Positions 53,275-57,605 of a DNA stretch of 64,000 nt are shown one piece after another. The position numbers and the translations under genes were made by a program. Positions within the stretch are counted from its first letter, which is position 1. Every line of letters starts with the position of its first letter. Below the pieces are notes generated by a model. That model had not been told where the DNA came from. It worked only from the letters and a program-made list of their open reading frames with translations, and searched no databases. The DNA is taken from the sequence record LC768500.1. One strand, given 5' to 3'.

Positions 53275-56200
53275 ATGTTTGCAAGTAAAGACGAATTAGA
53301 ACTACATCTTGCAAGAGAAAAACTTGCTATGATAGGAGCGACAGAAAGTCAGCTCCCCGAATACCTGCTCGATGACGACACAGAAGCGCTTCCCATCAGG
53401 ACCCCAGAAGAGTTGCTTCTAGCCCATTATCGAGAAGATACGTTAAGCGCGATCAAAACGGTCAGGTTCTTAAAGGACTTCGAACGTTATAACGCTAAAC
53501 CGGATCTGACGACGAAGAACATCTCTTTCTTAAAGGTTGCTGAAATCTTTAGACTGATGGGAATAAAGAATTACTATTTCTGCCTCCAGCTCAACAATCC
53601 GTTGCTGATAGGGGTGGATCCTTACGACCCCAACCTGACAGATGAACAAAAATTCATGATCCTCCAGGAGTGCCGTGAAAACTTCTGGTATTTCCTCCGT
53701 GAAGTACTTCATTTGAGTGGGGGTATTCAGTTCCAGGCAAACAGAGCAAACATCTGTTTCTTATGGTGTTATTTGTGTCACGTCAACACCATGCTTATCA
53801 TTCCCCGCCAATTTGGAAAGCTGAGCAAGCTAGATTCCTTAGTGAAGATCCCAAATGGATGGCGTAGAATGGGTGACATCAAGATTAATGATGTGGTTAG
53901 TACTCCAGATGGGGGTACGGCTAGAGTCTCTGGTGTTTATCCTCAGGGCGTTAAATCGTTATATCGTGTTACCTTTTATGACGGTCGTACGGCGGATGTT
54001 GGCGCCGAGCATTACTGGACTGTTTGGGACCCAGGTAAAGGCGACGGTGGCATCTGGCGCACACTCACTACGTTAGAATGCCAACAACGCATGACTGAGA
54101 TGAAGAAGTCGCATAACTATCTCTCCGTTCCTTTGGTTCAGCCTGATAATGACCCGGACAAGAAACTCGCCATTCATCCTTATGTCTTAGGTGTATTGCT
54201 GGGTGACGGCGGTATTTCTGGCAGTTCTGTTTTAATAACCAAACCCGACAAAGAACTTTACGATAAAGTCTGTAGTCTCATTCCTGATACTCTAGTCGCC
54301 GAATGGTGTAATGAAAAAACATTTGTCATTAAGCGCAGACCTGATGTTGAAGAAAAGACTAACGTAATGAAAGATAGTCTTAAAAGTGTTGATCTGATGG
54401 GCCTTCGGTCCTGGGAGAAATTTGTTCCTACAGATTATTTAAACGGCTCTTATCGTCAGCGTTTAGAGTTGTTGCAGGGTTTACTCGATACTGATGGACA
54501 CGCAGGTACCGGTGGTAACATTGAGTACTGTACGACGTCCCCCAAACTCGCTAAAGACTTCGTTTACCTTGCTCGTAGCATCGGTGCTATCTGTACTTGT
54601 AAAGAACGCCAGACGTATTATACCGACAAAGGAGAACGTAAACCTGGCCGGGTTTCTTATCGCATTAGCGTTCGTTATACGAAACCCTGGGAACTCTTCA
54701 CGTTAAGTCGTAAACGGGATCGTTTAGTTGACAAAACACGAGGGTTAAAATTTAACAGCCGTTTAACCATGCGTTCCATCGAGTATGTAGGGGAAGAAGA
54801 GACTCAGTGCATTGAAGTGGACCATCCTGATCATCTTTACATCATGGATGATTTCGTCGTCACTCATAATACTGTTTCTGCTCAGAGCATTATGTTCTGG
54901 CTAACTTACTTAACCGGGAAGTCTTACGAGTCCCACTTAATCACCCTGAAAGACGATAACCGTAGTCAGTTCGTAGAGGCGTTAAAGGGTATCCGTAACA
55001 ACATCCCGAGTTACTTAACCAACGTGGGGTGGCGAGATAAGGATAGCGGTAACTCGTTAACCTATAGTGCGTTTGGGGATGATAAGAAAAACATCTTCCG
55101 TATTAGCGTGCCGCAAATCGGTAGAGAAGCCGCTCGTAACGTCGGTCGTGGTTTGACTATCAAAACGCGTATGATCGACGAACCGGCATATATCAACTTC
55201 ATGGAAGAGATACTTAACGGTGCAGGTCCTAGTACGCTAACGGCTCGTGCTAACGCCAGAAGAATAGGCGAACCCTACGGGACGGGATTCATTACCACGC
55301 CTGCGAGTAAAACGACAGCCAGCGGCGAATACATGTACAACATGTTGATGGATGCGACCGAGTGGCGAGAAACGTTCTTCGACAGTTTTAACGAAAGTCA
55401 TCTGTACCAGCGTTTGATTAAAGCGAGTCCTGTGGAGGGAATCACCAGTCCTACCGTAGGCATGGTTTTCAACTACTTGCAGTTGGGTAGGAATAAAGAC
55501 TGGGTTAAGAAAACCATAGACGAGTTAAAGTTAAGTTTAGCCGAAGCGAAGATTGACTTACTGTTAATGTGGGACGATGCCAGTAAAGGTAAACTTTTCG
55601 ACGACTTAACTCGAGAAGCATTAAACGAGGGTAAACGAGGAATACTCTGGAGTCAGGAAGTAGGGAGTACGGGGTTGTTCATCGACTGGTTTATTACGCC
55701 AGAAGAACACACTCAAATCATTACTGGGAATAGTCAAACCTTTTACGTCGTCGGTTGTGATACTTCCGCTGCGCAAAACCGAGACGCCTGTACTGTCGTG
55801 ATAAGAGACGTCATGGACGGTAAAGTGATTGGGGTGGGTCGTTATCCGATAGCCTACTTAATGGACGTAGGCGAGGTATTACAGACGATCCTGTTAGAGA
55901 TTAAGAACAGCTTACTGATCATCGAGCGTAACTTCGCGCACCACATGATCGACCAACTGCTCGTTAGTCTTCCTGCATTAGGCATCGATCCCTTTAAACG
56001 TATCTTTAATCAGATCGTACAAGATCCGGTTAAGTACGAAAAAGAAATGATCGAGTTTAAACAACGTAATTTCGCTAACAGAGACAGTCACTTCTATCTG
56101 AGATTCAAACATCTGTTTGGGTTCGTTACCAATGCCAAAACGCGTGACGAAGTATATAGTTTTATCCAGGAAGCCGTAGGGACGACCGGAGATAAAATTT

Positions 56201-56673
56201 ACTATACCAAACTCATCGACGAGCTGGTTAACCTCAAAGAGAAGGGAGGTAGGATAGACCACGAAAACAACAAACACGATGACCTGGTTATCGCTTGGTT
56301 GTTGGGATTCTGGTTCTTGAAACTAGGTAACAACAAAAGTGAGTACGGAATTCCTCCAGGCATTAGTTTGAGTAAAATCAGCTTAATGCGTGTTGGGGAC
56401 GATAAGAATGAGGAAACCAACAGTGCGCACAATGAAGCGATGGTTGCACTCTATCGTCGTAAAGTTGAAGAGCTGAGTGACAGACTTATTAAAACCACCG
56501 ACAATACCGTAGCTCAAAGGATCGAGTACATGATTGACAAACTCAGCAGCATGATCCCTCAGGATAAGCGTAAGAGTTTGACCATCGATGAAATCGTTAG
56601 GAAAGCCAAGGAAGAAAGAGGCCGTCGAGTATTGGAAGCACGTAAGTTACGCAGTCGTTACGTGTATATCTAA
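53275..56673 (+). CDS. terL: Terminase large subunit containing an intein (782 aa after splicing)
   Basis: ECRENFWYFLRE, PRQFGK|T Walker A, MIDEPAY Walker B, VVGCDTS nuclease motif, HDDLVIAW. Confidence 0.93.
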   Translation: MFASKDELELHLAREKLAMIGATESQLPEYLLDDDTEALPIRTPEELLLAHYREDTLSAIKTVRFLKDFERYNAKPDLTTKNISFLKVAEIFRLMGIKNYYFCLQLNNPLLIGVDPYDPNLTDEQKFMILQECRENFWYFLREVLHLSGGIQFQANRANICFLWCYLCHVNTMLIIPRQFGKLSKLDSLVKIPNGWRRMGDIKINDVVSTPDGGTARVSGVYPQGVKSLYRVTFYDGRTADVGAEHYWTVWDPGKGDGGIWRTLTTLECQQRMTEMKKSHNYLSVPLVQPDNDPDKKLAIHPYVLGVLLGDGGISGSSVLITKPDKELYDKVCSLIPDTLVAEWCNEKTFVIKRRPDVEEKTNVMKDSLKSVDLMGLRSWEKFVPTDYLNGSYRQRLELLQGLLDTDGHAGTGGNIEYCTTSPKLAKDFVYLARSIGAICTCKERQTYYTDKGERKPGRVSYRISVRYTKPWELFTLSRKRDRLVDKTRGLKFNSRLTMRSIEYVGEEETQCIEVDHPDHLYIMDDFVVTHNTVSAQSIMFWLTYLTGKSYESHLITLKDDNRSQFVEALKGIRNNIPSYLTNVGWRDKDSGNSLTYSAFGDDKKNIFRISVPQIGREAARNVGRGLTIKTRMIDEPAYINFMEEILNGAGPSTLTARANARRIGEPYGTGFITTPASKTTASGEYMYNMLMDATEWRETFFDSFNESHLYQRLIKASPVEGITSPTVGMVFNYLQLGRNKDWVKKTIDELKLSLAEAKIDLLLMWDDASKGKLFDDLTREALNEGKRGILWSQEVGSTGLFIDWFITPEEHTQIITGNSQTFYVVGCDTSAAQNRDACTVVIRDVMDGKVIGVGRYPIAYLMDVGEVLQTILLEIKNSLLIIERNFAHHMIDQLLVSLPALGIDPFKRIFNQIVQDPVKYEKEMIEFKQRNFANRDSHFYLRFKHLFGFVTNAKTRDEVYSFIQEAVGTTGDKIYYTKLIDELVNLKEKGGRIDHENNKHDDLVIAWLLGFWFLKLGNNKSEYGIPPGISLSKISLMRVGDDKNEETNSAHNEAMVALYRRKVEELSDRLIKTTDNTVAQRIEYMIDKLSSMIPQDKRKSLTIDEIVRKAKEERGRRVLEARKLRSRYVYI
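53821..54870 (+). mobile_element. 350-aa class 3 intein with LAGLIDADG endonuclease
   Basis: Starts LSKLDSLVKIPNGW, block B HYW, LGVLLGDG and LQGLLDTDG, block F TQCIEV, ends VTHN|T. Confidence 0.92.
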
Positions 56674-56996: not shown

Positions 56997-57605
56997 TTAG
57001 TTTCTAATGTAATCCACCAACGCTTCAAAATCACCGTCGTAGAAATACGGCTTAATTTTGATTAAAGAACAAGCCGCAGACAAAGTGTTTTCGTAACGAT
57101 GAACGAATCGCTCAAAATACTCTCGGTTGAGAAGACGGGTTTCTTGATCATCTAAAGATACTCTTTTATTCCAAGCTCTATCTAAAAACGTATCATAATC
57201 GATTTTTACAAAGATAAGTTTATCGGGGTACATTTGGGTGTTGAATATTTTTAAAGCCTTTACGTTGCGTTCTATAACACTGTAAAGACCTATTCGACCA
57301 TTACCCTGATAAACCGCAGTAGAAATAAAACAGCGATCGGAGATAACTGTCTTCCCTTGATTTAAAGCAGGAACAACAACTTTATCTCCTAACTCTATTC
57401 GCTGAGCAATAGCGAGATAAAGTTTTGCTTCTTCACAAATCCCGTTATCGATAATGAGATTACGGATGGTTAACAAAGAGTCCGGAGACTTAGCCGGTTC
57501 TTCCACTTGAAGAACGTCGTAATTATCGGTCTTCAATCTCTCTGTTAGTTGTTTGGTTAAAGTTGACTTACCCGCTAAGTCCATGCCTTCGAGAACAATG
57601 TACAT
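56997..57605 (-). CDS. tmk: Thymidylate (dTMP) kinase
   Basis: IVLEGMDLAGKST P-loop, EEP, SDR..IS..VYQG, PDKLIFV. Confidence 0.93.
   Translation of the reverse strand: MYIVLEGMDLAGKSTLTKQLTERLKTDNYDVLQVEEPAKSPDSLLTIRNLIIDNGICEEAKLYLAIAQRIELGDKVVVPALNQGKTVISDRCFISTAVYQGNGRIGLYSVIERNVKALKIFNTQMYPDKLIFVKIDYDTFLDRAWNKRVSLDDQETRLLNREYFERFVHRYENTLSAACSLIKIKPYFYDGDFEALVDYIRN

Follow-up and report, generated by a model that had tools for sequence, protein, structure and literature searches.

The stretch of DNA considered here, referred to below as the window, comprises 64,000 nucleotides of sequence record LC768500.1 (251 kb), which belongs to the Klebsiella jumbo phage phiKp_32. An open reading frame (ORF) on its plus strand (53275..56673) remains open through 1132 codons, and the encoded protein of 1132 amino acids is 100% identical to a phiKp_32 protein that is entered in GenBank as 'hypothetical protein'. 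Our analysis concerns this protein, which we read as the precursor of the phage's large terminase (TerL), interrupted in the Walker A motif by an intein that carries the marks of class 3. The precursor matches a single place in the LC768500.1 record, and terL is present in a single copy. Its closest relatives were found in Klebsiella phage YC1 (99.4% identity), Stenotrophomonas phage BUCTxx100 (99.0%), and the Klebsiella phages KPN8 and Miami (∼93.6%), while jumbo phages of Vibrio, Aeromonas, Erwinia, Shewanella, and Pseudomonas (EL) encode relatives at 45-53% identity. An intein of phage EL may already be listed in InBase as 'PhiEL ORF11'. Miamivirus is classified within the Chimalliviridae; phiKp_32 itself is unclassified, and is a close relative of Miamivirus. 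The features of the locus are summarized in the table.

Table. Features of the interrupted terL gene of phiKp_32 (positions in the window)
Feature	Position	Strand	Remarks
N-extein of TerL	53275..53820	+	182 amino acids, ends IIPRQFGK (first part of Walker A); phrog_2 match
Class 3 intein, Leu1...Asn350	53821..54870	+	Hint splicing domain split by LAGLIDADG homing endonuclease
Block A (LSKLDSLVKIPNGW)	53821..53862	+	Residue 1 is Leu, a non-nucleophile; Trp14 conserved in 105/107
Block B core, Gly61-Ala-Glu-His64-Tyr-Trp66 (GxxHxW)	54001..54018	+	His is B:10; Trp of the Trp-Cys-Thr (WCT) triad is B:12
LAGLIDADG motif 1, VLGVLLGDG	54184..54210	+	Acidic Asp129; read from sequence
LAGLIDADG motif 2, LQGLLDTDG	54472..54498	+	Acidic Asp225; Pfam PF14528 match
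Cys330 (TQCIEV), block F:4	54808..54810	+	Predicted initiating nucleophile of class 3 splicing
End of block G: Thr348 (WCT Thr), penultimate His349, terminal Asn350	54862..54870	+	Invariant in 107/107
C-extein of TerL	54871..56673	+	600 amino acids plus stop; Thr+1 (54871-54873) completes Walker A (GK/T)

With the whole protein as query, 120 relatives were retrieved, and 13 of them lack the insertion; inteins at the same site numbered 107 in the comparisons below. In the 13 intein-less homologues (773-787 amino acids), PRQ[QFSAC]GK runs directly into [TS]V[STG]xQ. One of them, P0055, reads PRQFGK followed at once by TVSAQV, nearly letter for letter as the two extein ends of the window (IIPRQFGK before the intein and TVSAQS after it). 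Since the motif is uninterrupted in the 13 homologues, the junctions GK/L...HN/T are unambiguous, and the intein corresponds to ORF residues 183-532, with FVVTHN at its end. An earlier note on this DNA, made from the letters alone, had described an insertion splitting the GK/T of the TerL Walker A motif, with Leu as residue 1 (Leu183 of the ORF) and Thr at +1, and the intein-less homologues bear out this description. A Ser as residue 1, which the same note had named as the case that would count against it, is ruled out by these homologues. The WCT triad (HYW with His64 and Trp66 at 54010-54018, Cys330, and Thr348) was likewise found where the note had read it, and the two LAGLIDADG motifs, which it had judged intact, both retain their acidic residue.

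The identity of the host protein was approached through profiles and through predicted structure. The N-extein matches the PHROG family phrog_2 'terminase large subunit' (E 2.8e-36); profile searches of Pfam, NCBIfam, PHROGs, and PDB (alignment A1) recognised neither the C-extein nor the intein-less homologues. The natural intein-less homologue P0055 was folded with AlphaFold2 (alignment A2; mean predicted local distance difference test score (pLDDT) 82.7). This model matches T4 gp17 over its full length (3cpe/3ezk, E 2e-15), with the ATPase and nuclease domains both covered, and it also matches the large terminases of T7, D6E, Sf6, and HK97. Its ATPase domain alone matches 2o0h and 4znl, and its nuclease domain alone matches 5m1f and 3c6a. 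Because of these fold matches the host protein can be taken as TerL and the split motif as its Walker A; in the P0055 model an N-terminal ATPase of the additional strand, conserved glutamate (ASCE) type with Walker A is joined to a C-terminal RNase H-like nuclease. The PHROG match and the fold of this model agree in identifying the host protein as TerL.

The class 3 inteins, first defined in 2010, occur mostly in the P-loops of ATPases, phage large terminases included (PMC2807308). With the 350-residue intein as query, phmmer found 18,813 cluster representatives at E<=1e-3, of which 5,311 reach E<=1e-30. In the PDB the best sequence matches were two mini-inteins of class 3 from DnaB, Msm DnaBi1 (6bs8, E 2e-8) and Mch DnaB1 (6rix, 6riy); matches at these levels exceed chance by a wide margin. 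The alignment to these mini-inteins is in register from intein residue 4. Cys330 falls opposite the catalytic Cys in the 'VRCVEVD' of 6bs8 and 6rix, and blocks F and G read 'TQCIEVDHPDHLY...VVTHN' in the intein and 'VRCVEVDNPEHLY...VPTHN' in class 3 DnaB inteins. An AlphaFold2 model of the intein (57-row alignment; pLDDT 95.9, predicted template modelling score 0.92) gave Foldseek matches to TliVMA (E 1e-18), PI-SceI (8e-17), and PI-PfuI (6e-12); its middle domain matches I-DmoI, and its Hint part compares with the class 3 inteins MchDnaB1 (6rix) and Msm DnaBi1 (6bs8) at template modelling scores of 0.81-0.82. The defining features of the class that are readable from sequence or predicted structure are all in place, namely a non-nucleophilic residue 1, Trp66 at B:12, Cys330 at F:4, and Thr348 at G:5, together with Thr+1, the block B His64 (B:10), the penultimate His349, the terminal Asn350, and the HINT fold.

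These residues are also the ones that do not vary. Asp54, His64, Trp66, Cys330, Thr348, His349, and Asn350 are invariant in all 107 same-site inteins, and Thr+1 is present in 107/107 with an extraction pattern that allowed Thr or Ser, and in 94/94 in a direct count. In a wider family of 163 inteins from other host proteins, His64 and Cys330 are each found in 163/163 and Trp66 in 162/163; among these best-scoring members, 128 follow the GK of other P-loop ATPases. Position 7 of block B is occupied by Gly61 (54001-54003), the resulting GxxH being shared by 86/107 same-site inteins, where class 1 inteins have Thr. Asp54, upstream of this Gly, is invariant instead. By every mark in its sequence the insertion is a class 3 intein, and splicing is predicted.

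Residue 1 behaves quite differently. At this site it is Leu in 23 inteins, Met in 23, Ala in 15, Phe in 12, Glu in 10, Tyr in 8, Pro in 5, Gln in 4, Gly in 4, Cys in 2, and Asp in 1, and at least 37 changes are needed on the extein tree (the joined exteins were used both for this tree and for the identity counts given below). The intein of phage Miami, with exteins ∼97% identical in DNA to those of phiKp_32, starts with Asn, and that of P0002 with Ala. In the wider family Ala predominates (106/163; consensus AQPLD...) and Leu is found in 3/163. The view of Leu1 as an unusual start, put forward in the earlier note, therefore stands as a departure from the wider-family consensus and falls at this TerL site, where Leu ties with Met as the commonest residue. 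Such hypervariability is expected if residue 1 has no chemical role, as in the class 3 mechanism, and judging by these counts Leu1 carries no special meaning and the position is unconstrained. The 107-member family can be regarded as a natural mutational scan, in which residue 1 accepts at least 11 residue types but no change is tolerated in the His, Trp, Cys, and Thr-His-Asn. This pattern backs the published class 3 mechanism without extending it. Two same-site inteins in metagenomic TerL proteins (P0010 and P0013) start with Cys yet keep the full WCT triplet, and P0011, a near-twin of P0010 with 98.2% identical exteins, starts with Ala. The two Cys1 starts resemble the few Cys1/Ser1 WCT inteins that were left unresolved by Tori et al. 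(PMC2807308).

Turning to the endonuclease domain, Pfam PF14528 LAGLIDADG_3 matches intein residues 213-267 (E 1.2e-7). Each of the two LAGLIDADG motifs has an acidic residue at position 8, and the predicted fold is that of I-DmoI, PI-SceI, and TliVMA. Asp129 and Asp225 are kept in 17/17 members of the subclade of ∼350 amino acids that includes the phiKp_32 intein. The other 90 of the 107 same-site inteins (255-323 amino acids, typically ∼314; e.g. P0027-P0104) lack the acidic residues of both motifs and have no Pfam LAGLIDADG match; they retain a full-size middle domain and are not shrunk to mini-inteins. In comparison with phage Miami, the ratio of nonsynonymous to synonymous divergence (dN/dS) was 0.13 for the intein and 0.14 for residues 101-300, taken here as the endonuclease part, which indicates purifying selection on the intein. 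With respect to mobility, the intein must have been gained or lost at least 8 times on the extein tree to account for its presence and absence, and well-supported branches force at least 6 of these events. P0012, which has the intein, and P0118, which has none, have exteins that are 96.9% identical when compared at the protein level, and differ by the whole intein.

The intein and its exteins also diverge to very different extents between close relatives. When phiKp_32 is compared with Miami at the nucleotide level, the N-extein is 97.6% identical, the intein 76.9%, and the C-extein 95.2%, with corresponding synonymous divergences (dS) of 0.115, 1.12, and 0.247. Since dS of the intein lies far above that of the exteins, the difference between the two inteins reflects age and not relaxed constraint. 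The diverged block extends from ∼53778 to ∼54720 and thus covers 43 nucleotides of N-extein together with ∼300 codons from the start of the intein; over its final 50 codons the intein is nearly identical in the two phages. Of the 13 differences in the N-extein, all silent, 8 are crowded into its last 43 nucleotides (P = 1.3e-6), and the tract exchanged at this end looks like one of co-conversion. Similar pairs were found elsewhere in the family: extein and intein identities are, respectively, 98.2% and 86.2% for P0010 and P0011, 95.7% and 64.5% for P0014 and P0019, and 96.8% and 73.4% for the window and P0002.

The same block boundaries are visible in run X18, a public sample for which Logan contigs were used. 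Its assembly forks at 53784/53813 and at 54688/54716, exactly at the ends of the diverged block. One branch is 99.4% like the window allele (depth 123) and the second is strongly diverged (depth 47.5); the flanks have depths of 177.5 and 169, approximately the sum of the two branches, with the qualification that the N-extein flank is only ∼93% like the window, that contig depths are rough, and that the sample may contain several phages. The first ∼300 intein codons and ∼43 nucleotides of the N-extein behave as a swappable cassette. The record of Raoultella phage VB_ZK_P1 (L003, PV662128.1) starts, with its bases 1-3, 2 nucleotides before intein codon 2, so it was linearised right at the N-junction of the intein, possibly because the assembly broke at the polymorphic fork.

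Allele swapping of this kind is a tidy example of an intein evolving uncoupled from its host gene, and is the only part of the present results that might repay further work. A bolder interpretation, which we regard as rather unlikely, is that anciently diverged alleles starting with Leu, Asn, or Ala are kept in circulation and are cassette-swapped among the terL genes of near-identical Klebsiella chimalliviruses, each endonuclease serving as a weapon between phages, or as an immunity marker, during co-infection. If this were true, the intein would be the protein-level counterpart of the intron endonuclease of PhiPA3, which is said to be 'weaponised', and the polymorphism would be selected instead of neutral.

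Our interpretation of the locus, which we hold with high confidence, is that the single TerL gene of phiKp_32 contains, at the classic P-loop site (Lys/Thr of Walker A), a functional class 3 intein with a LAGLIDADG homing endonuclease. The splicing mechanism that we propose follows from homology to the inteins MP-Be DnaB (of mycobacteriophage Bethlehem) and Msm DnaBi1. With its P-loop split, the 1132-residue precursor would be unable to bind ATP. With the block B residues His64 and Trp66 activating it, Cys330 (F:4) would attack the Lys182-Leu183 bond to give a thioester branch, after which the N-extein would be transferred to the hydroxyl of Thr+1. Cyclisation of Asn350 would then release the 350-residue intein, and an O-to-N shift would restore ...PRQFGK-TVSAQ... 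and yield an active TerL of 782 amino acids. Leu1 would take no chemical part in these steps and would be selectively free. The endonuclease domain of the freed intein would be expected to cut the intein-less terL of co-infecting phages, with the intein copying itself in.

Several points weigh against this interpretation. Splicing and cleavage by the phiKp_32 intein are predicted activities, and the dependence on Cys330 is carried over from its relatives. At position B:7 the intein has Gly, not Ser as in MP-Be DnaB or Asp as in Msm DnaBi1, so that the N-junction may be activated in a somewhat different way. For the endonuclease, the loss of the acidic LAGLIDADG residues in 90 of the 107 same-site inteins means that activity is not general in this family, and what suggests activity in phiKp_32 is the integrity of its motifs along with dN/dS. 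Finally, an intein-less allele was seen neither among the closest relatives nor in the contigs of four runs, none of which skips 53821-54870, although contigs are no proof that such an allele is absent.

One alternative would be that the insertion is a dead Hint/endonuclease remnant that does not splice, the terminase either working with the insert in place or being non-functional. The predicted status of precursor splicing and the bare 'hypothetical protein' label in GenBank would be compatible with this, but these are lytic phages that have been cultured, and the insert splits the P-loop GK/T of their sole terL gene; moreover, the catalytic residues do not vary even between inteins with 25-50% identity, and a dN/dS of 0.13 goes together with a frame that is open over 1132 codons. 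Since terL is essential and present in a single copy with a split P-loop, and these phages nevertheless grow and form plaques, we infer that the precursor must splice; a dead remnant is extremely unlikely. Equally unlikely is a splicing chemistry other than that of class 3, which could take the form of a shifted junction with Ser184 as a class 1 nucleophile or of a class 2 reaction in which Thr+1 attacks the N-junction directly without Cys330. The second residue of the insertion is indeed Ser, and class 2 inteins likewise have no N-terminal nucleophile. However, if the junction lay after the Leu, the spliced protein would read GKL-T and its Walker A would be disrupted, where the intein-less homologues read GK and then T, and position 2 is Gln in 68 of 94 aligned same-site inteins, with no conserved nucleophile. 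Class 2 inteins, moreover, lack the WCT triplet by definition (PMC2807308), and this triplet is invariant at the TerL site. All three readings, the dead remnant, the shifted junction, and the class 2 reaction, were rejected.

A different possibility, already raised in the earlier note, is that the intein is conditional, redox or stress gating through the catalytic cysteine switching on DNA packaging only under permissive conditions. Thiol nucleophiles are in principle sensitive to oxidation, and in the class 3 intein Msm DnaBi1 H2O2 blocks splicing reversibly via a Cys48-Cys118 disulfide (PMC6195587). The phiKp_32 intein has six further cysteines (87, 151, 163, 237, 258, and 260), five of them in residues 101-300, but none of the six is conserved across the 107 same-site inteins (the Cys87 column holds L 48, I 22, M 11, and C 10), and the interval from block A to block B, which holds Cys48 in Msm DnaBi1, contains no Cys. 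With Cys330 as the only conserved cysteine and no partner like Cys48 of DnaBi1, the suggestion has no support. In addition, the wholesale swapping of alleles between near-identical phages is more in keeping with a selfish element than with a regulator that has been tuned. We consider a conditional intein improbable, and the gating of packaging by redox state would, on the residues present, be pure speculation.

Intein-bearing TerL precursors go by various public names in RefSeq and GenBank, including 'DarB-like antirestriction', 'gyrA: DNA gyrase subunit A', 'putative ATP-dependent DNA helicase', and 'hypothetical protein'. These homologues are misnamed because the intein drives the match, and once the intein is recognised, terL can be annotated correctly throughout this family of jumbo phages. 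The gene directly downstream of terL is thymidylate kinase-like and lies on the opposite strand (56997-57605, minus strand); it is annotated as 'thymidine kinase' in phage Miami and as 'hypothetical' in phiKp_32.

A class 3 intein at the P-loop site of TerL is of an already well known kind, to which the phiKp_32 element adds a member. A 2025 survey listed 293 TerL inteins in actinobacteriophages (10.1101/2025.01.02.630785), and in our literature search we found no description of a Chimalliviridae TerL intein family. The prototype of class 3, the DnaB intein of mycobacteriophage Bethlehem (PMC2807308), shares with the phiKp_32 intein a non-nucleophilic residue 1, the WCT triplet at B:12/F:4/G:5, Thr+1, the penultimate His and terminal Asn, an internal LAGLIDADG endonuclease, and a location in the P-loop of a phage ATPase. 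The phiKp_32 intein differs from it in that the host protein is TerL instead of DnaB, residue 1 is Leu, B:7 is Gly and not Ser, and the element is known from sequence alone. The TerL1-a inteins of mycobacteriophages (PMC5050341) occupy the same position, with the invariant Lys of the TerL Walker A on one side and its Thr on the other, which has been described as a 'classic' P-loop intein site in these phages. The likeness here is one of insertion site. The TerL1-a hosts are Terminase_1 family proteins of phages of Actinobacteria, whereas phiKp_32 has a Chimalliviridae-type TerL, with no match to a Pfam terminase model, and is a phage of Enterobacteria. Msm DnaBi1 and Mch DnaB1 (6bs8, 6rix; PMC6195587, PMC7664689) share with the phiKp_32 intein the block F pattern 'xxC[IV]EVD..HLY' and the block G 'THN', but they are mini-inteins without an endonuclease, start with Ala, and have DxxH in block B; Msm DnaBi1 also carries the redox partner Cys48, which the phiKp_32 intein lacks. 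The best structural matches, PI-SceI, TliVMA, and PI-PfuI, have the same two-domain architecture and are full-length inteins with a LAGLIDADG endonuclease. In contrast to the phiKp_32 intein, however, these three belong to class 1, with Cys1 and with Asp at F:4, and their identity to it is just 12-17%.

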